A program made the translations under genes and the position numbers. This document shows positions 32,990 through 56,526 of a stretch of DNA of 64,000 bases, in pieces; position 1 is the stretch's first letter; each line of letters opens with the position of its first letter. The notes under the pieces were generated by a model. That model saw only the letters and a list, made by a program, of their open reading frames with translations, ran no database searches and was not told the DNA's origin. Source of the DNA: Azolla caroliniana (lineage: Eukaryota > Plantae > Polypodiophyta); assembly GCA_043228905.1 (NCBI GenBank), contig JBHGNT010000011.1, forward strand, positions 18,476,001 through 18,540,000, given 5' to 3'.

Positions 32990-35900
32990 GTGGTTACGTT
33001 GTCGACCCAAAGTGCAACATTGTGACTTGTTTGTTTGGTCCCGTAAATTGCATGCACTTGTAAACATGAAACAATATATGTTGTCTCCACACCCCACTTG
33101 CTTGATCTAGGGACAGATAGTCATGTGGTTACCCTTGAATAGTCAATAAATACATTGTACAATGTTTATGTGATGGGTCGAAGTCTACAAAGTTGCCACT
33201 TGTTTTTGGAAGGATCCTTGTTGTGTACGAGAAGTCCACATAGATATAACACCTATTAACACTCCATAATCCTTAATCTTTTTATTAATTGTAAGTCTTC
33301 CATTGTCTCTTGATTCACTCCACTTTGATAATCACATATTTCATCAACATTTCCTTACTAGTCTTCTTTCACATATTGCAAATGATCATCCAAGTTCACA
33401 TGAAAGACTTTATCCAACAATACTACTTATCATAGAAATCTCATTATGTATATTCATAGCCACTATCCTATTAACGTGCTCCATCTTAAAGAGGTCTCCA
33501 CTTGTAAGTTTCATCTTTACATGGTGGTCACCAAAATCCACATAGAATAAGGCAATTCCTCAAATGCTTGGATATCCATGGATTGTCACTAAACATTTCT
33601 AACTTTATTGATTAGGTTTAACACACATTTGAGTCTCCATATCTTCACCAACCAGTTTGTGTACAAAATCTTTCAATGGCACCATAATACAATGTATCAT
33701 TAACAATATTTCTCTTTCTCTATTATCATGAACTATATTGATCCTCCTAAATCTAAACTGTAATGTTAATTTCTTGGATCGCGATGACATCATATGGTCT
33801 GCATGGGCACAAGAGTAGAATGCCATGCAACATTTATGCTTACTCCTACCTTGAGTTGGGATGGTTACAAACAAGCACAAACCTTCATGTTGTAAGGGTT
33901 TTACGTTGATGTGTTGAGTTACATTCATGAAGGTAGAATTCTAAGCTTCACATAAGTGACATCTTATCTTTTGTATGTTTTAGAATTTCTTGTTAAATTT
34001 CAACAATCTACTTTGGTTTTGATAGTATGTGCAATTTCCTTTTGGACATGTGACACTAGTTTGTCATAGTTAAGGAAAATGTCGTGTTTGTGTGTCTATG
34101 TGGATTAACCATCTCTAATTGACCATTCCAACATAATGTTCTTGTGATTCCTTGAGACACAAGCTATGTTTATAAAAGAGTACCCTAAACTATTGAGAAA
34201 CATATTGGATCATTGTGAAAAAGCTTAAGCTCTAGTTAAATTTAAGTGTTGCTAATACTTTCTCAACATGACATGGTTCAATTATAACAAAGGACAAACT
34301 TTTTTATTTTGACTAACCTTATAGTTCTCATAAATTTGTGTCCTTTTTTTTGCCATTTTTGACATCGTGAGATGCTTTCTCCCAAGGACATTAAAGCAAA
34401 ATAGGCAAATTTTGGTGGCTCTTTTTCCCATTTTGATATCGATATGATGCTTTGGCATCGGTGACTAGCCTTGCGAATGATTTTATAACAAAATTGTAAG
34501 GTGTCCAACCTGATTTGATTGTAGTGATTTGATCTTGAAGTAAGTCATATTCTCAATGTTTTTATTTGAGGGTTAAAAAACGATTATTTCATTCTATAAC
34601 CATATTAAAGTGTAAGGGAGAAACACGAAATAATACATTTATTCCTATGAACTAGCTTGAACAAAACTAACATGGGTTTTCTTGTTTAGCTCTTGCAACC
34701 GAAATTTCACATCGCAAAGATCACAATGTAAGTTCTCACTACCATGTCGGCAAACATGATGAGACGACTCGGTGTTGGTGACACTACCTATTTCTGTAAC
34801 CCGTGGGAATTCATGGGGGATGGTGAGTACTCCCCCATTGGATTTCCAATCATTATTCACATGATGTGTGTTAATGCAAGAAGTTAACATGTCTTGCCTA
34901 CTCTCTCGACCATGCAAAAATTGCTCCCCAAACTCATCCATTTTGAGATAGTGTGCAAATCCGCCCACACTAGTAAAGTTAATGTTGCTCGATGAAATGC
35001 CGATATGGTGCATTGGTATGCCTCGAAGTTGAATAGTTTGAAAGGGGTCCTACACAAGCCAACATAAACAATGAATTTGATTGAGCCCTAAAGATATACC
35101 ATCCTCTTCAATGTAGAGTAAAAGACCCATTATTACCATGGAGATGTCAATGGACCTAGACCTTTGATATCCAACATTTGATGCAGGAAGTGGGTCCATT
35201 TGCAAATTAGATATGTTTTTGGGTTCAAATGAAGGTGATGATGCTACCATGTTGTGGGCTTGAATCAAGCTTTTCACCCTCATGTCCATATTGTTTCTAG
35301 TGGCCATCTCATTGGATTTGCTCCTTATGTTTCCGCTATTCCACGAAATGCACGACTTTCTAGTGCCCTCTTTCTCATAAGCTAGAGAAGCTCGCCCTCG
35401 AGGAACCACTCTGACTAGTGGGCTTGACGTTGGCCTTCTTGATGGGTCATGTTGGCTTGTTTCACATTGTGTTATAAGAGAATGTTTCATCCCAGTTTGG
35501 GTCATAGAAGAAGAAGACGACGATATTGATGACTTTGACACAATCGATTTTCGTTTTGCTTCCACCTCTATGCAAGTTGCCTGTACACCTTGATGAGGTT
35601 TTGTCATGCTAGGGGAGTTGCTTCCAGAAGTTATGTTTCTTGATCTTCCCATTAGAGAAATGGAAGGGAGTTTGGATATAGTTTTGGGTAATGTTCTCGA
35701 GCTTTTCGATACTACAACATCCGAAGAGTTGCTCGCAATCAACTTAGGATTAGACATACCTAGTGTTTTGTAGGGATCTTTTGATATTCTAGTCGGTGTC
35801 ACATCGCGAGTTAGAGAACCCAATGAGGACATGATTGCACATTGTTTTGTTGGGCTTGTGGGCCGGCTAATGGACTTTGAACCCACCATTACTCTTTTGC

Positions 35901-37033
35901 TTGAAGTGTTTAAGTCGATCACACCGGACAAGGAAGCACCTGATGTGATCCGACATGATTTAAAGAGGTTCGTTGATCCATTAGCTCTTGAGGAGGGCTC
36001 TTCATCACAGGAGGGATTCACCAAGTACTGTATGATTTACCAAACAAGAACTCTTCATTTTATTAGAAGGCATTTGAGAAAACTGAGAGGAATACGAATC
36101 CATAACTTCCTTTTTATTTCCGAAGAAATGAGAGTTGATAACTTACACATGATTTTCTTGGGAGGTTATGTTGGACATTGAGTGAATGAGATTCGCAATC
36201 CTTTTCACGGGCCGGTGCGGACATCAACCTACAGGGCGAGAAATTTCAAAGCATGAGGATTAAATGGATCACACTGGTGCGCGAATCGCCGAGCAAAACT
36301 TAAATCATTGAATCGCCGAATGAAAGGAGGTTTCGATCGAATCATTTTAAAGGTGTATAAAAATGAAGAAAGATTTTGACTAGTACGAAGGATTGTTGTG
36401 ATCTTCGGGGTTTTCCGAAAGATCAATGAAGAAAACACACCCCTTAAACTGCCATTAGGATCAAGAGGTTTTGTAGAGGTGGGTATGGTGTGTGTTTGTT
36501 AGTAGTTACCAATCATAGTCATGCTCTCCCAACTCTAGTGTTGTCAAGAGATCCTCCTTCTCCTCAATGTAGCAGCTCCTGCCCAGCAGCACCTTCTTAC
36601 TACTGCCACAGCTTCTTCTATGTGACTCTATTGATGCTTCTAAAGGATCTTGACCTACCTGCCCACAAGCTGCAACCAAAGATTGCAGGAATATCAGCAA
36701 ATAATCAGGGTTAGGGTTTAGGGTTTACACATACACAAAACAGCAAAAAAGAAGACAAAGAAGAACCCCTATTCCAAACCCAAAATGCTATTTGGCTGCA
36801 GAGATTCATTTTTCAGATTGATGATGGGGATTACCGTCCAGATCATTGGCTGAACTCCCATTGGGCCCATGCGAATGGTATTTGCTGCAATTAGGGATGC
36901 TGGGATGGATGGCACTCATCTTCAACCTATTCTCATTCCCCTTGGGATGGTTAGCATTGACCTTGTGCATATCTTGAAACAGGGCAAGCTGGTCTACCTC
37001 TGATTCATCACTCTTGCATCTTCTTTGATGCAT
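32990..37033 (-). pseudogene. Decayed multi-exon coding sequence of unrecognised family (host pseudogene or TE-borne gene)
   Basis: A chain of minus-strand ORFs (37033-36806, 36700-36506, 36438-36229, 36024-35050, 35013-34645, 34508-34278, 33928-33605) has plausible splice sites (TAG|GACCCC at ~35049; GTTAGT donors at ~34670 and ~34318) plus internal stops and frameshifts. Confidence 0.4.
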
Positions 37034-38851
37034 GCTATGAAATTAATGTTGAGAGGACGAAGAGGAAGATTGATAGCAGAGATGGTGTAAATTGAAGATG
37101 AAAGATTGCAAACAGAGCTTTTTAAGGTTTGTTTAGAAATTAGATTCAAATGTGTTTGTGTGTATGCATGCATGTATGTATGTACTCATCCAATAGAAGT
37201 AGAACTAGAAAGGGAAGGAATTCTACTAACATTCCTGTTGCTAATCCTGCTGCTATCATGTGTTTATATATATATATATATATACATATGTGTGTGTAGT
37301 TTACCAAGTTACCACCAAATATAGATGGGTTTTTTTTATTATCATAGGAAACATACATAAAACATTTGTGGTGTGTTTTCATTCTCTTTATAATACAAAC
37401 AATTATATACATACATATAAATATAAAAAATATATATAATACACACACACACACACACACATACAAATAAACTCTAAATACCACACTAATCGTACATGCC
37501 ATTCCAATCCCCATGTCCCCTTCTTGCCTTGTATGTTGCCTGCCCCATAGGGCCCCCTAATTTTAGCGGAGGAGGGCCCGTGAAGGTTTGGGGCGGGGGA
37601 CCTTTTGTCGTGCCTCTTACAACACTTCTGTCTACTTCGTCCTCATTTTCTGGCTTAGATGAATACATTTACGTTTTGCGTCTTTTCTTGTCCTTTACAA
37701 ATCGGTCGAGTTTTCTTTCGCATGGATGAAAAAACTAACCGCGGAGCTTTGTTCTATAACTACTTGTCGGAGAATCCAATGTTTGATGATCATTGCGGTT
37801 CCTTATCAAAGCTGAAAATTGCCGAAGTACGACATTTCTCTTTCAGCTTTAGCTTCTAGTTTTTATTTTGTATGTCTCGCTAAAGTTATTGTGCATAACC
37901 TCAACTAAAAATACAAACAGATTTTGCAATGAGCATGTTTATATTAGAACACACCAGGAAACCCCTTGTCAACACATAACCTCTATGATATAGAGTACAA
38001 CCACATCATTGCTATGTTTTCATCTATATTGAAAGATAAAAATTTCAACAACATAAGCTTGTGAATCTATACCGATTGATTTGGTTTTCAAGACACAATT
38101 TGTTAAATGATCTAGGAAGGCATGATTTTCACAATGGGCTTTAACTACTTCATAATGTTGTTGTTTAATTGTCCATGGAATTGATGAAAGATTATGATAC
38201 AATTAAGACATGAAGAGAGAATCGTAAAGGCTTGAGCTTGAAAATTCAGACAATACTTGTTAAAACTTAGGATTGGCATTCTATTCATAAATTGTCCATC
38301 ATCACTCAAATAGCTTCTTCCCAAAGGACTAGTTTCCGCCGATTAGTTTATGGCCATCCCACTTGTCGGATTACTTTAGCACTCTTTTTATACCTATCAC
38401 CATACCTTTGAACACACATGTCGTAAAGATTATTAAAACACAACCGTCTTTAAGACAACACTATAACGTTTTCAGGTGGAAAACAAAAAAGTTATAACAA
38501 TTTACACCCTACAGATTCATCACATCGAATTGACGTGGATCACGAATGAGAGATAATTTAAACCTAGTCATAATACTTCGTTACATTTTTCTAATGGCAT
38601 CCGAGACTATCTATAGTTAAATTCAATATATGGTTTATTTAGCTATTCAACATAACCCATGCTTCAGGCCGGACGCTTGTGGTTCTGTTTTCCGTAAATG
38701 CGACCATTAGCGGGCGTCCACCAGAGTTGTGAAGCCTTTCCTTATATCACAAAAATGAAGTGAAGATTGTGCCAAATATAACACTACTTTTTAACTAATT
38801 TAACTACCACCACTAATTTAACTACATACTTCTGCTGCTGCTGCTGCTGCC

Positions 38852-41800
38852 ATGTGTGTGTCTGCCCAAACACAAAGACATATACATATGTGTATTCCAT
38901 TATCTCCAATCCTTCTAGAAGCTTCGCCCATGGCGAGGCAGCAGAAACCCAGTGAAAAGACAGACTTCCTGTGGAAACAATACTTCAAAGATCCTTCCAT
39001 GTGGTACGACCACCGCAACAACAAGGTATGTGTCTCCGTGTGTGTGTGTGTGTGTGTGTCTGTGTATGTAAAGGATCCTCCAATGTGGTATCACTACTCC
39101 GCAACAATAAGGCGTGGTGCTTCTCTGTGTGTGTGTGTGTGTGTGACAGATTAAAAACAGTTTTTTTCTTACCCGCTCAAACCACAAGCTTCGGATCACC
39201 TTCGTTTGATTTATTTTCTAAATTTTTGGCTCCTCCTTTTAAAAATTGATTTACATTCCTATTTCCTTCATAAAGAACAAGACATTCTTGTTTTTCGACA
39301 TAGAATAGCTTTGGATCTCCAGACTTCAGGCATACTATTAGGTACGAGTCTTTGTGGATCCATGGATGGCATAATCCTTCGTGGATCCTTGTTGAAATGC
39401 AAAGGAGAGCATCCTCCAATGAAGATACCAAAGAAATTCATCAAAACGAGTTTCTTTGGAGAAATCATAAGAATGATTTTGCTTTTCTGTTTGTTGCAAT
39501 GCTCAAGGATTGTGCCAAGAAGAAGGATATCTGTAAAGGAAGTAGATTACATGCTCATATCCTCAAAAAAGGATTACTCGAGAAAAGCCCTTACCTAGCT
39601 AGCTCTTTGATCAGCATGTATGCTAAATGTGGTATGCTCACTAAAGCACGAAAAATTCTTCAAGACATGAGTATTCGAGATGTAGTATGCTGGAATGCAT
39701 TGATTACTGGATATGTTGAACAAAGACAATTTCAAGAAGCAGTAGATTGCATGAAAAGTATGGTTAGTGAGGGCCTCTCGCCAAATGTGGTCACCTTCAT
39801 TTGCATTTTGAAGGCATGTGGAAATATGGGAAATGTAGAGAATGGCAGACAAATTCATGAGGACGTTGTGAGTAGAGGGTTACTAGAAGAGGATATTATG
39901 CTTGGAACCGCTTTGGTGGATATGTATGCAAAATGTGGCGCCCTTACAAAAGCACAAGAAGTGCTTGAAGGGCTTCCTGTTAGAAATATAGTTTCTTGGA
40001 ATGCCCTCATTGCAGGGTATGCCCAACAAGGGCAATGCCATGCAGCATGGAACTGTTTCAAACATATGTTACGTGATGGTCTTTCTCCAGACATAGTCAC
40101 ATTCATTTGCATCTTGAAGGCTTGTGGCAGCGCACGAGATCTTGAGAGGGGTGAACAAGTTCATGAAAAGATTGTAACTATGGGCTGGCTAGAGATGGAT
40201 ATTGTGCTTGGAAACGCATTGATTGATATGTATGCCAAATGTGGTGCCCTTGTGAAAGCACAACAAGTACTTCAAGGCCTTCCTATGCGAAATGTTGTCT
40301 CTTGGAATACATTGATTGGAGGGTATGCCCATCATGTGCATTGTCACGGAGCATTAAGCTGTTTCGAATGGATGCAAAGGGAAGGCCAATCTCCTGATGA
40401 AATCACCTTCATTTGCACTTTAAAAGCATGTGGAATCATAGGAGCTATAGATAAGTGCAAGCAAATTCATTATGAGATTACGAGTAGGGGTTTACTAAAG
40501 GAGGATATTGTGCTTGGAAATGCATTGGTGGATGCTTATTCTAAATGTGGAGAGCTTAAAATGGCCCAGGAAGTGCTTGATGAACTTCCTTGTCGAGATG
40601 TAGTCTCTTGGAATGTAATGATTGCAGGATATGCCCAGCAAGAGCAAGGGCACTATGTTTTGGATTGCTTTCAAAGGATGCAAATTGAGGGCCTTTCTCC
40701 AGATGCAATCACTTTCATTAGCATCTTGAAAGCATGTGGCAGCAGAAGAGATATAGATGAGGGCAAACAGATTCATGAAGAGATTCTCAATGCAGGTTTT
40801 CTAAATGAGGATATTTTTCTTGGCAATACATTGGTGGATATGTATGCTAAATGTGGTGTTCTTCCAAGAGCACAACAAATACTTGAAGAGCTTCCTTCCC
40901 GAAATGTAGTCTCTTGGTCTGCACTGATTGCAGGTTACGCCCAACAAGGACAAGCTCACGAAGCATTGAATTGTTTTGAATGTATGCAAAGAGAAGGATT
41001 TTCTGCAGATGAGGTCACACTAATCTCCATCTTGAAGGCATGTGGAAATACTGGAGCTATAGAGAAGGGCATCGAAATTCATGATAAACTTGTCAGTAAG
41101 GGATTGCTAGATAAGGATATCATGCTTGGCACTGCTTTGGTGGATATGTATGTCAAATGTGGTGTGCTTGCAAAAGCACAACAAGTACTTGAAGAGCTTC
41201 CTGTTCGAAATGTAGTTTCATGGTCCGCATTGATTGCAGGACGAGTGCAAAGAGGGCAATGCCGTGAAGCACTCCATTCCTTTGAACAAATGCAAAATGA
41301 GGGTGTCTCTCCAAATGTGGTTACCTTCTTTTGTATCTTGAAAGCCTGTGGCAGCACAGGAAATATAGAGAAGGGAAAGCAAATTCATGAAGTAATAATG
41401 AACAGAGGCATCTTGATCAAAGATGTTGTGCTTGGTGATGCTTTGGTGGACATGTATGTGAAATGTGGTGTGCTTGATAAAGCCCAAGAAGTGCTCGAAG
41501 AGCTTCCTGTACGGAAAGTGGTCTCTTGGAATGCACTGATTTCAGGGTATACCCAACAGGGGCAATGTCATGAAGCACTTAACTGCTTGCAGAGGATGCA
41601 AAGTGAGGGTTTTGCTCCAAATGTAGTCACCTTTGTCTGTATCCTGAAGGCTTGTGGTCACATGGGGGCCATTGATAAGGGCAAACAAGTATATTATGAT
41701 CTTGTAACTAAGGGCTTAATGGAGAAGCACATTGTGTTTGGCAATGCTTTGGTCGATATGTATGCCAAATGTGGCGCTGTTGCAAAAGCGCAACGAGTGC

Positions 41801-42333
41801 TTGAAGACCTTCCTCTTAGAAACATAGTATCTTGGAATACTCTAATTGCAGGGTATGCCCAACAAGGGCAAGGTCACGAAGCACTGACTTGTTTTGAACA
41901 GATGCAAAGTGAGGGGCTCTATCCAGATGATGTTACATTTCTCTGCGTTCTCAGTGCATGCACCCACTCAGGTCTATTAGATGAAGCACAAATGATTTTT
42001 GCCAGTATGACGCGAAGATTTGGGGTCACACCTAATGTAAAGCATCATACATGCATGGTGATCATTTTTGGATACGCGGGGCAGTTTGATGAGGCGATAT
42101 CAGTGATTAAAGTTATGCCTTCTTCTGATTATCTTGCAGTTTGGCTGGCATTGTTAGCAGCTTGTTCAAAATGGGGAAATGTAAACCTTGGGAGATTGGC
42201 ATTTGATCAGGCAATACAGCTAGAAGATGGCTGTGGGGCAGCTTATGTACTTATGGGTAGTACTTTTGCAGCTGCTGGCATGCAAGAGGAGGCAGCAAAG
42301 GTTGAAGCCATGAGACTAATATATGCTGATTGA
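38852..42333 (+). CDS. PLS-class PPR protein (E subgroup) with an N-terminal OSB-type PDF motif; 2 exons, ~1067 aa, start codon uncertain
   Basis: Exon 1 ends at 39025 (…LWKQYFKDPSMWYDHRNNK|GTATG). Exon 2 starts at 39304 (TAG|NSFGSPDFRHTIRYESLWIHGWHNPSWI) in frame with ORF 39352-42333. There are 8 repeats of xxMYAKCG at ~102-aa spacing, then P2-L2-S2 and E1/E2 motifs. Confidence 0.9.
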
Positions 42334-43977: not shown

Positions 43978-46368
43978 ATGCTTTGGAGATGCAGGGTCCA
44001 CAACAACCACAGAAAGGCTTCATCAGAGATAGAGTCAAAAAGCATGGTTAAGTCCTGCAACCCTCTCTTTGCGAGTTATAGCAAAAGCAAATATCCTAAA
44101 CAACCAATGCAGTGGGATGACAGGCCGTTATCTCCCTCTTCCCACACTTGTGTCACACTTCTTAAGTCTTGTGCCAAGCTTCAAGACTTAGAAAAATGTA
44201 TCTCCATCCATAAGGACATTGTAAAGTTAGGGTTTCTAGACAATGACCTTTTTGTTGGTAGTTCCTTGGTGGATACTTATGCCAAATGTGGTTCAATTGT
44301 TAGAGCTCAAGATGCTTTTGATAACCTTACCAGACGAGAGGTTGTCTCATGGACAGCATTGTTGTCTGGATATGTCCGCCATGGCTATAATGACCAGGCA
44401 ATAGAGCTCTTTGAAAGTATGTTATTCGAGGGTATCTCGCCGAATGCTCACACATATGTTTGTATGTTGAAAGCTTGTGGAAATCTTGGATCAACTAAAA
44501 GGGTCCTAGAATTACATGAAGAAATGGAAAAGAAAAGATTGCTTGATGACAATGACCCTTTTGTTGGCTCTGCATTGATCAATATCTATAGTAAATGTGG
44601 ATTGCTTGCAAAAGCTCAGCACGTGTTCAACAAATTTCCAGTTAGAGACGTTGTATCATGGACAGCACTTATTTCGGGATATGTTGAACATGATTATGTA
44701 GAAGAAGCACTTCATTGTTTCCGGCAAATGAAATTTGAGCATGTTCAACCGAACATTGTTTCATATGTTTGTGTTGTCAAAGCTTGCACTAGTGTAGGAG
44801 CCATTGATGTTGGACAAGAAATACATGGAGAGATTGAAAGAAGGGGGTTGTTTCAAAAAGACCTTATTGTGGGCAATGTTCTAGTGGATATGTATGCCAA
44901 ATGTGGTTATCTTATCCTGGCGAAAGAAGTGTTCGACAAGCTTTATACAAGAGATGTCATCTCATGGACTTCGCTTATTGCAGGATATGCTGACCATGGG
45001 CACGAAAAGGAAGCACTCAAATGTTTTGAGAAGATGCAATGTGATAGTGTCTCTCCTAATCCCGTCACTCTTATCTCTTGTTTAAAAGCTTGTTGTAGCC
45101 TTGAAGCCATTGACAAAGTTCGAGAACTACACGGCGAGATTGAAAGAAAAGGGTTATTAGAGAAAAATGTTATTCTGGCTAACACTTTGATTGATATGTA
45201 CGCCAAGCATGGATTTCTCTCCATAGCACAAGGAGTGTTTGATGAGCTTCAGACCCGGGATGTAATCACATGGACCACACTTATTGTAGGGTATACTGAT
45301 TATGGATATGGGACAGAAGCTATTCGATGTTTTGAACAGATGCAACTTGATGGTGTTCCTCCAAACGTCGTTACTGTCATTTGTACCTTGAAAGCTTGTA
45401 CTAGCGTAGGAGCCATTCATAAGGGACAGATGATACACACAGAAATAAAAAAGCACACACTTTTAGAAAAAAATCTTGTCATTAACAATGCATTGATCGA
45501 TATGTATGCTAAATGTGGCCTTCTTAACATAGCAAGGCATGTATTTGATGAGCTTCCCATCCAAGATGGGGTGTCATGGGCATCTCTTATCTTAGGATAT
45601 GCAGAACATGGGCATGAGGAGGAAGCTCTAAAGTGTTACGAAATGATGCAAATAGATGGCGTTCTCCCCGATGCCGTTATATTCATGAGCATCTTGAAAG
45701 CATGCAGCATCATCGGCGCAACTGCCAAAGGCATTCAGATACATGCACAAATTGAAAGGCAGGGGTTGTTGGAAATGAATCTTGCAGTGGGTAATACTTT
45801 GATCGATATGTATGCGAAAAGTGGGTCACCAACAAGAGCACAGCATGTTTTTGATCGGCTTCAAATTCGGGATGTGGTCTCATGGAATGCTTTACTCACA
45901 GGATACGCTCAATCCGGAGAAAGTGACCATGTTTTCCATTTCTTTGAGAAGATGCTTGGACAAGGTATAGAACCAGACCTGGTTTCCTTTCTAGTTGTAA
46001 TGTGTGCATGTACCAGGAATGGCCTATTTCATAAGAGCAAAACATATTTTGAGACCATGACCAAAGACTATGGTATGATTCCGACCATCAAACATCAAAG
46101 TTGTATGGTTGATCTTCTAGGTCGTATGGGTGAGGTGGACAAGGCGGTCGAAATTATAAAGAAGATGCCATTATGCCCTAATCTTGTTGTTTGGCATACT
46201 GTATTAGGTGCTTCTAGATATTGGGGCAGTGCAAGCATTGGAAAACAGGCATTCGAAAAAGCCATACATTTAGATAAGAATGATGCCGTAGCGTATATTA
46301 TGATGTCCCACATCCTCGCAAGCATGGATTTTGAAGATAACAAAATGTTGAGAGCGACAAAGTTGTAA
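43978..46368 (+). CDS. PLS-class PPR protein, E subgroup, truncated in E2 with no DYW domain; 796 aa
   Basis: A single ORF has 6 xxYxK(C/H/S)G repeat units and VVSWTAL/ITWTTL P motifs, followed by P2-L2-S2 and E1 (PNLVVWHTVLGASR). Confidence 0.92.
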   Translation: MLWRCRVHNNHRKASSEIESKSMVKSCNPLFASYSKSKYPKQPMQWDDRPLSPSSHTCVTLLKSCAKLQDLEKCISIHKDIVKLGFLDNDLFVGSSLVDTYAKCGSIVRAQDAFDNLTRREVVSWTALLSGYVRHGYNDQAIELFESMLFEGISPNAHTYVCMLKACGNLGSTKRVLELHEEMEKKRLLDDNDPFVGSALINIYSKCGLLAKAQHVFNKFPVRDVVSWTALISGYVEHDYVEEALHCFRQMKFEHVQPNIVSYVCVVKACTSVGAIDVGQEIHGEIERRGLFQKDLIVGNVLVDMYAKCGYLILAKEVFDKLYTRDVISWTSLIAGYADHGHEKEALKCFEKMQCDSVSPNPVTLISCLKACCSLEAIDKVRELHGEIERKGLLEKNVILANTLIDMYAKHGFLSIAQGVFDELQTRDVITWTTLIVGYTDYGYGTEAIRCFEQMQLDGVPPNVVTVICTLKACTSVGAIHKGQMIHTEIKKHTLLEKNLVINNALIDMYAKCGLLNIARHVFDELPIQDGVSWASLILGYAEHGHEEEALKCYEMMQIDGVLPDAVIFMSILKACSIIGATAKGIQIHAQIERQGLLEMNLAVGNTLIDMYAKSGSPTRAQHVFDRLQIRDVVSWNALLTGYAQSGESDHVFHFFEKMLGQGIEPDLVSFLVVMCACTRNGLFHKSKTYFETMTKDYGMIPTIKHQSCMVDLLGRMGEVDKAVEIIKKMPLCPNLVVWHTVLGASRYWGSASIGKQAFEKAIHLDKNDAVAYIMMSHILASMDFEDNKMLRATKL

Positions 46369-54206: not shown

Positions 54207-56526
54207 CTAGCAAATGCACCTACCATACTCAAATTTGTGAATTTGGTTTGCATCAGCAACTAGAATTCTGCGCTGCTCCGTCATTGACATGAATTTAATG
54301 ACAGAATGACAATCACCACAAATACGAAGCTTCATTGTGACGTGTATAGGCACACCTTCATGAGTATTGATCAATGCACATGCAATTGCAAGTTGTACGC
54401 TGTGGTCACACAGCATATTGTTCTTTTCTTCATCTCGAATAGTTTGCTGTAACGAAAGAAATCCTTGGGAATAGCCCTCTTCTGATAATTTTTCGTGAAT
54501 TTCCTTTAGCTTCACATATGCACTATGACAATGGCTCTTATTTTCAAAGGAATGCACATTTCTACTGCTATCGGTCCATCGACTCCAGCCCTGTATCTTC
54601 CATGCCTTATTTTTAACTCTCCAGGCTTCAACTGCATCTGCCTCTGTTTGCATGCCAGCTGCTAAGTATATGTTTTCCATGCAAACATATGCTCGAACAC
54701 ACTTTTCATCCAATTGTACTAATCGCTCAAATGTCCATCTCCCAAGCTTCACGTTCACCCATTTGTGACAAGCACCCAATATGGCTAGTAATAGTGGAAG
54801 ACTTTCAGAAGATGAAATTTTGTTGAGCAACATTTTCGCCTTGTCAAAGTGGCCTGCTCTGCTGAAAAGATCGACCATACAAGTATAGTGTTCTAGTGAT
54901 GGAGTTAGTTGATGGGTACACATTTCATCGAACAGCCTTTCTCCTTCCTCCATCAGACCTGTATGGCTACATACAGTCAGCAGAACAAGGAATGTAACCA
55001 GATTCGGTACAATACCTTCTTTTCTCATTTTTGCGAGTAGGTCCAAAACTATGTATGATTGACCTAACTGAGCATATCCTGCCATAAGAGCACTCCAAGA
55101 AACCACATCTTGAACTTGAAGCTGTGAGAATACTTCTTGTGCTTTATCCAATGCACCACATTTGGCATACATGTCTACCAAAGTAGTACCAAGCACAACA
55201 TCTTTTAGCAACAACCCTTGTCTTCTTACCTCAGCATCTATGTCTTTCCCGACTTCTAGACACCCCACATTGCCACAAGCTTTCAGAATGCATACATAAG
55301 TTATAGAATCTGGCCGTACTCCTTCACCTTGCATCTGCTTGAGACATTTCAAGGCTTCTTCAACAAGACCATGCTCAACATATCCTGTGATGAGTGTACT
55401 CCATGACACAACATCATGAGTAGGAAGCTCATAAAATGTTTCTCGTGCTTTCCCAAGTGCCCCACACTGTGCATACATGTCAATCAATGCAGTACCTAGT
55501 ACTATGTCTTTTTGCAATAATCCTTTCTTTCTTAACTCGGCATCGATGCCTTTCCCAGTATCAAGATCTTTCAGCATTGTGCAAGCTTTCAAAACACAAG
55601 CATATGTTATTGCATTCGGATAAATCCCCTCACCTTCCATCTCATGGAAACATTTTAAGGCTTCATAACCAAGCCCATGTTGAACGTACCCAGCAATAAG
55701 AGCAGTCCAACACACAACATTGGGGACTGGAATGTATTCAAGTACATTCCTCGCTTTCTCAAATGCACCACATTTTGCATACATATCAACCAATGTGGCC
55801 CCAAGCATAACATCTTTCTTTAAAAACCCTACCTTCCTAACCTCAATATCGATATCTTCGCCAATCTCAAGAGATCCTAGACTTCCACATGCTTTCAGCG
55901 CACAAAGATAAGTCACAGCATCGGGGCAGACCCCTTCATCTTGCATGTGTTTGTAGCATTTTAGAGCTTCATGGTTGAGTCCAAGCTGAGAGTATCCCGA
56001 CATAAGGATGGTCCAAGATACCACATCTTGTATTGGAAGCTGTTCAAATACTTCTCTTGCTTCTCTCATCGCACCACATTTAGCATATGTTCTTATAAGA
56101 GCCGTGGTCAGATACACATCTCGAGAAATCAATGCTCGATCAAGGAGGTCCGAGTGTATCTTCCTCACCTTTACAATATTCTTTTCTTGGCCACATGTCT
56201 TGATGAGGTTCAAAAGAGAATTTCTATCTTTGAACAGTACTTTAGGCAACTCTTCCACCATCTTGGATGTAAATTCTTGAATGGCTATGCCTTTAGACAT
56301 GGCGTTGCTATGCTTGGCTTCTGAATCAGGGTTTCTTTTCTGTACGAAAATTGGCGGTGATGGAAATGCAAAGCATCAAACGCAGACGAGAAGAGGAGTT
56401 CTCGACGCTTACCTTGCGAATGAGATGCTCCATAAACGCGGAGGGGCCTCGGAGGGAGACCTGATGGCGCAGGAATGTCGCATCTTTGAAAATGGTGGAA
56501 GAAGAAGAAGAAGAAGAAGAAGCCAT
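54207..56526 (-). CDS. PLS-class PPR protein with E1/E2 and a variant DYW (WW-like) domain; 2 exons, ~748 aa
   Basis: Exon 1 is 56526-56413 (MASSSS...EHLIRK|GTAAGC), followed by a 73-nt intron ending TTTCGTACAG. Exon 2 is 56339-54207, in frame with the 697-aa ORF. There are 4 YA(K/Q)CG units, and the C-terminus reads AWKIQGWSRWTD..VHSF...EEGY...HSVQLAIA...RICGDCH...IHKFEYGRCIC. Confidence 0.92.

Follow-up and report, generated by a model that had tools for sequence, protein, structure and literature searches.

A putative PLS-class PPR gene with an intron-split N-terminal PDF motif related to that of OSB proteins

The 64 000-nucleotide stretch of DNA analysed here (the window) contains, at about 38930–42333 on the plus strand, a gene in which a PDF motif, to judge from its sequence a true homologue of the PDF motif of OSB proteins, is split by an intron and lies ahead of a PLS-class PPR array. 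We regard this structure, a spliced PDF + PLS-E gene, as very probable. The gene appears to be nuclear and to belong to a fern; its closest proteins are those of Adiantum and Ceratopteris (about 40–58 % identity). The features of the region are as follows.

About 38930–42333, plus strand: PLS-PPR gene with a split PDF motif, one of three PLS-PPR genes in the window.
38930–38962, plus strand: short leader; its most probable start codon is ATG 38930, and ATGs at 38888 and 38852 are in frame as well.
38963–39025, plus strand: first half of the PDF motif (exon 1); 28.7 bits with the PPR-linked profile, 23.3 bits with the OSB-only profile.
39026–39303, plus strand: phase-0 GT-AG intron of 278 nt within the PDF motif, placed by its splice sites; codon position as in L003, L006, L007 and L008.
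39065–39149, plus strand: decayed tandem copy, within the intron, of 38981–39062 (exon-1 end, donor and GT repeat), found by local alignment.
39304–39405, plus strand: second half of the PDF motif (start of exon 2); 23.9 bits PPR-linked, 18.4 bits OSB-only; aligns to the Pteridium transcript protein P0218.
39406–39474, plus strand: variable linker between the PDF motif and the first PPR repeat; pLDDT <50 in the corresponding stretch of an Adiantum homologue, and poorly aligned to P0218.
39475–42129, plus strand: PLS array of 26 repeats (L-S, seven P-L-S triplets, P2-L2-S2); Pfam PPR_2 E 5.6e-134, with a 102-residue period.
42130–42333, plus strand: E1/E2 region and stop; Pfam E_motif E 0.0044, below the cut-off, with clear alignment to the E regions of relatives.

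A splice from 39025 to 39304 had been proposed in a preliminary description of this DNA, and the proposal holds. The intron is of the GT-AG type and in phase 0, with the donor AAG/GTATGT at 39025/39026 and the acceptor ACATAG/AAT at 39303/39304; seven AG sites lie in 39240–39345, and the one ending at 39303 is alone in keeping the frame. The translation of exon 1 ends in FLWKQYFKDPSMWYDHRNNK and that of exon 2 opens with NSFGSPDFRHTIRYESLWIHGWHNPSWI. Exon 2 has 1009 open codons, running to a TGA at 42331–42333. Since a stop codon in the frame of exon 2 lies immediately 5' of it, splicing is the one way in which the motif can be made whole. The first ATG of exon 2 is codon 32, downstream of the motif. 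In the spliced product the PDF motif is N-terminal, in frame and upstream of the 26 repeats, the position originally claimed for it, and is followed by about 975 residues.

For scoring of the motif, each exon alone and 3388 six-frame pieces of the window were compared with PDF profiles. Against a profile built from nine PPR-linked motifs, intronless Adiantum copies among them, exon 1 gave 28.7 bits (E 1.9e-7, positions 2–22) and exon 2 gave 23.9 bits (E 6e-6, positions 27–56), the next of the 3388 pieces being at E about 1. The claimed homology with OSB proteins is borne out by an OSB-only profile of 163 motifs, all from SSB-bearing OSB proteins, with which exon 1 scored 23.3 bits (E 7e-6, positions 3–25) and exon 2 scored 18.4 bits (E 2.4e-4, positions 29–57); the next match was at E 1.3. 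For every full-motif PDF profile the two exons were the best two matches among the 3388 pieces, collinear and complementary, and a chance match was therefore rejected. In a 124-motif alignment the five invariant columns (W, D, R, W, W) are all kept here, as are seven of the eight near-invariant columns (including W, K, P-D-F, L and P); the eighth carries I for V. The OSB-type motif has the signature W..FF..P..WWDNR..K...PDFKHK....LW.....P.W; the window copy departs from the consensus in having DHR for DNR and FRHT for FKHK.

Neither of the exon halves, nor any of nine intact PDF motifs, was assigned to a Pfam family (best E 0.11), and a word search with residues 1–42 of exon 2, too divergent as a query, gave no match. 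The PPR-linked profile matched 1099 cluster representatives at E<=0.001. A local profile found an SSB-like domain on 69 of the matches examined, including OSB3 of Amborella and of Canna, and the Pfam SSB domain was seen on nine of ten matches scanned, in some cases below the cut-off.

The intron within the motif is ancient. A phase-0 intron after W.D.R..K is also present in PDF-PPR genes of Diphasiastrum (L003), Sphagnum compactum (L007) and S. tenellum (L008) and, at the identical codon, in an OSB gene of Rehmannia (L006). In addition, OSB, moss and lycophyte genes have a phase-1 intron upstream of the PDF exon. Adiantum genes and four Pteridium transcript assemblies have PDF + PLS frames that lack the intron; P0218, the protein of one of these assemblies, aligns with exon 1 and with exon 2, each separately.

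These comparisons bear on whether the halves are joined at all in this species, or whether exon 1 is untranslated or non-genic and its match due to chance or a relic. The transcript check covered the contigs of four runs, none of them on record as RNA, with the repeat 39026–39154 masked; among these no contig carried the 39025/39304 joint. One RNA-like contig, covering 38832–39025, follows the window as far as 39025; the 101 letters beyond this point fail to match 39304–39334. Because the repeat from 39026 was masked and the contig tail departs from the start of exon 2, this contig may come from unspliced RNA or from genomic DNA. The intron position common to moss, lycophyte and OSB genes, and the position of the first ATG of exon 2 past the motif, also argue against unjoined halves, and we consider that reading highly improbable. 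A contig from a related organism has indels at 39254–39279, in the intron, and none in the exon part that follows.

The intronic duplicate at 39065–39149 is identical to 38981–39062 in 64 of 82 paired columns, with two gaps. It is frameshifted and its donor is changed to GC. Its use as a working exon was rejected on account of the frameshift and of the upstream intron, which would be about 49 nt long. The duplicate could disturb the mapping of reads at the 39025/39304 junction.

Downstream of the linker, the 26 repeats carry mostly canonical residues at their code positions. The TGA that ends the E region occupies the site at which relatives have the Trp opening the E+/DYW extension. Pfam found no DYW match, and tblastn found no remnant beyond a few codons after the stop. 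A self-sufficient editing enzyme was rejected on the grounds of the stop at 42331–42333 and the lack of a DYW domain. Of the PPR editing factor put forward at the outset, the PLS array stands; without a DYW domain the protein would be at most a specificity factor. By its repeats and tail (P-L-S leading to P2-L2-S2, E1/E2, no DYW) the predicted protein belongs to the E subgroup of PLS-class PPR proteins. In Salviniales ferns DYW is present on few PPR proteins, and it has been proposed that these factors act in trans (PMC12548569).

The layout is not confined to this gene. A PDF motif, whole or in part, accompanies PLS repeats in at least 33 proteins from Sphagnum, Diphasiastrum, Adiantum, Ceratopteris (partial) and Pteridium, the last as transcripts. 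Some members have two or three PDF motifs and some a full DYW domain; P0226, P0088, P0107 and P0218 are annotated merely as hypothetical or PPR proteins. A unique, recent fusion was rejected on the presence of the layout in mosses, lycophytes and ferns: it is that of an old, multi-copy family across these three groups. No seed-plant member was found among the best 150 of the 1099 profile matches.

Among the best 120 PPR homologues, 15 score on the PDF motif, several of them on the second half alone. This low count is due in part to annotation that starts in exon 2. In Adiantum, two genes (L004:6001-6013 and L005:6001-6165) are annotated from inside or near the second motif half. At L004 the acceptor is at the conserved position and no first half was found within 6 kb upstream. 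In several close relatives no more than a partial or decayed motif is present, and it may therefore be optional. The PDF motif of the window gene might likewise be inherited and dispensable, spliced and translated yet inert; the protein would then be a normal PLS-E factor, or a paralogue in decay within a large family. The half motifs or remnants that the closest homologues often carry, and the absence of a first half within 6 kb upstream of the acceptor of P0001, are in keeping with this, as is the loss here of the DYW tail, with a stop at the conserved Trp position. The summed PDF score is also lower than that of the intronless Adiantum copies (about 53 against about 100 bits), from which the profile was partly built. 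Nevertheless, this gene has kept all the invariant residues, both its splice sites and its frame, whereas the adjacent intronic duplicate has decayed, and the motif has been retained from mosses to ferns. We think a dispensable motif possible, on the unlikely side.

The history of the family was examined with trees of the motif. A first tree, of all 124 motifs, gave no resolution. A tree of 29 PPR-linked and 50 OSB motifs (63 columns), from which tandem-PDF proteins and fragments were left out, needs two label changes; the tree grouping the PPR-linked motifs lies 20.8 log-likelihood units above the quick free search, with a p-AU of 0.74. A single ancient fusion is not rejected by this test, and 63 columns cannot prove it. 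Because of the shared introns and the tree, the simplest account would be one DNA-level capture of exons from an OSB gene before the split between mosses and vascular plants.

The PDF motif is found in other settings as well. P0122 and its relatives have up to ten tandem PDF motifs and no SSB or PPR domain. One tandem-PDF protein is from the dinoflagellate Effrenium voratum, which places the motif outside green plants also.

Folding was carried out on the PDF motif of the intronless Adiantum homologue P0107. It is predicted to form a small, autonomous alpha/beta domain (pLDDT 89), and the linker to the repeats is of low confidence (pLDDT <50). Its best matches by shape in the ESM Atlas had TM 0.80–0.85 and comprised three clusters of PPR proteins and one of SSB/OSB proteins (TM 0.83 for the latter, model against model). 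Among solved structures there was no PDF relative by sequence, and by fold the best Z for the P0107 model was 2.8, with Foldseek E>5. Two unnamed clusters of phage proteins in the ESM Atlas also resemble the shape of the model (TM 0.63–0.68); a search of PHROGs gave no sequence match in support of a phage likeness.

With the OSB proteins AtOSB1-4 the window gene shares a homologous motif of about 50 residues and its internal intron; a like fold is predicted for the motif of the homologue P0107. OSB2 is PTAC9. OSB proteins have one to five C-terminal PDF motifs and an OB-fold/SSB domain; the window gene has a single, N-terminal motif joined to a PPR array, no SSB domain in a Pfam scan of both exons and no clear transit peptide. 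Membership of the OSB family was rejected on the lack of an SSB domain and on the N-terminal rather than C-terminal position of the motif. The PDF motif is reported as the ssDNA-binding part of OSB proteins (PMC6451138; PMC13393729), that of AtOSB1 being reported as sufficient for ssDNA binding (PMC6963530), and OSB proteins bind as tetramers (PMC6451138).

PLS-E editing specificity factors, which receive DYW in trans, provide a second comparison. Like them, the window gene has P-L-S triplets, P2-L2-S2, an E region and canonical code residues and is devoid of DYW; it adds to these an N-terminal domain, predicted to be folded, that is encoded across an intron. The unnamed PDF + PLS proteins, some with E or DYW tails, share its domain order and, in moss and lycophyte genes, its intron; they differ in that some have two or three PDF motifs, a full DYW domain or, in P0295, a transit-peptide-like leader, and several Adiantum copies are intronless. 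Accessory domains described in PPR proteins are RRM (PPR4), SMR, NYN, LAGLIDADG, CBS and SAP (PMC9459714), and a 2026 survey of editing factors describes RRM-, MORF- and RanBP2-PPR fusions and does not mention OSB (PMC13386178). Such proteins likewise combine a PPR array with a second module that binds nucleic acid or a partner. The fusions listed there are mostly P-class or sporadic, whereas the PDF + PLS layout recurs in the PLS class with a module known from DNA maintenance; searches of both surveys by term gave no PDF or OSB fusion (PMC9459714, PMC13386178).

A 2026 survey of the OSB family makes no mention of PPR (PMC13393729). A search of the literature, from which most subscription papers fell outside, found no description of a PDF + PPR architecture. 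This agrees with the earlier statement that the architecture is uncharacterised as far as is known, and it is probable, not certain, that it has not been described before.

The start of the protein is less sharply defined. The ATG at 38930 is followed by GC, like the MAG or MAA starts of fern relatives, and the PDF motif begins 11–14 codons after this likeliest start. In a single contig (depth 5) of a relative a base is missing at 38865, which would break the frame from 38852. The leader is 13–39 residues long, depending on the ATG chosen, and by eye shows no clear transit peptide, as is the case in most fern members; the leader of the moss member P0295 is transit-peptide-like by eye. A pyrimidine-rich TAG at 38917–38918 (plus strand), located 19 codons upstream of the motif's first Trp, is a candidate phase-1 acceptor. 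Distance and phase are as in the Rehmannia OSB gene, which may be coincidence. Such an acceptor may permit an upstream exon; the contig over 38832–39025 runs across it.

Taken as a working protein, the product could act as follows. The gene family would have arisen by a DNA-level fusion of the PDF-coding exons of an OSB gene with a PLS-PPR gene, a route suggested by the shared introns. The 26 repeats would read one organellar RNA sequence; sequence-specific RNA binding by the repeats is established for PLS proteins as a class. Since there is no DYW domain, any editing would need a deaminase supplied in trans. The PDF motif, as predicted on the homologue, would fold independently at the end of a flexible linker and, as OSB biochemistry suggests, would add a sequence-independent grip on single-stranded nucleic acid. 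The motif is taken here as a single-strand anchor because the OSB PDF motif is reported to bind ssDNA and the PPR-linked copies are basic (mean net charge +2.1, against +1.2 for OSB motifs; the window copy has +2). Points against an anchor are that OSB proteins are tetramers and a single, monomeric motif here may bind weakly, that there is no clear transit peptide, that 15 of the best 120 homologues score on the motif, and the departures from the consensus. The reading as a PPR specificity factor to which a non-specific anchor for single strands is tethered has in our view about an even chance of being correct. The anchor might hold ssDNA at nucleoids or transcription bubbles, as put forward in the preliminary description, or RNA just 5' of the PPR site, and we regard each as about half as likely as the anchor reading as a whole.

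Alternatively, the PDF motif could be a protein-contact module instead of a binder of nucleic acid, and serve to dimerise the PPR protein, to dock it on OSB or nucleoid proteins, or to bring in a DYW donor. Trp, Pro and Phe make up most of the invariant residues, OSB proteins are oligomers, and the average charge of tandem PDF proteins without SSB is neutral to acidic (mean -0.6), all of which would suit such a role. Yet the sole activity reported for the motif is ssDNA binding, the basic charge of PPR-linked copies equals or exceeds that of the OSB copies, and the motif also occurs on members with a DYW domain of their own, so that it does not serve to replace a missing DYW. A contact role is accordingly doubtful. 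For the anchor reading, a broader extension would be an old class of PLS-PPR proteins of seed-free plants that carry an ssDNA module from organelle DNA maintenance and are held at nucleoids or transcription bubbles for co-transcriptional editing, or, in DYW-bearing members, act at R-loops. This is speculative, and we think it rather unlikely.

Surveys of PPR genes would miss PDF-PPR genes, because the PDF motif lacks a Pfam model and predicted genes frequently begin in exon 2. The N-termini of many fern PPR genes are probably mis-annotated, as the PDF + PLS family indicates. With this family one could ask directly whether transcription at nucleoids and organellar RNA editing are coupled, and also by what means PLS proteins acquire affinity for RNA where a lineage has no MORF helpers; the module to delete or swap is a single 55-residue domain. 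The window copy, which has neither DYW nor a clear transit peptide, is not the member of choice for such tests.

Two further PLS genes lie in the window. That at 56526–54210 (minus strand) has a likely 73-nt phase-0 intron (56412–56340) near its start, and its DYW-like tail reads HSV at the catalytic HxE position. A decayed PDF motif in this gene was rejected, its N-terminal pieces scoring on none of four PDF profiles. The third, at 43978–46368 (plus strand), encodes 796 aa in a single frame, with no PDF motif and no DYW match; its leader is more transit-peptide-like. At 35050–36036 (minus strand) there is a Ser-rich open frame of 328 codons, with shorter frames on the opposite strand, which is possibly the antisense of a transposon remnant.
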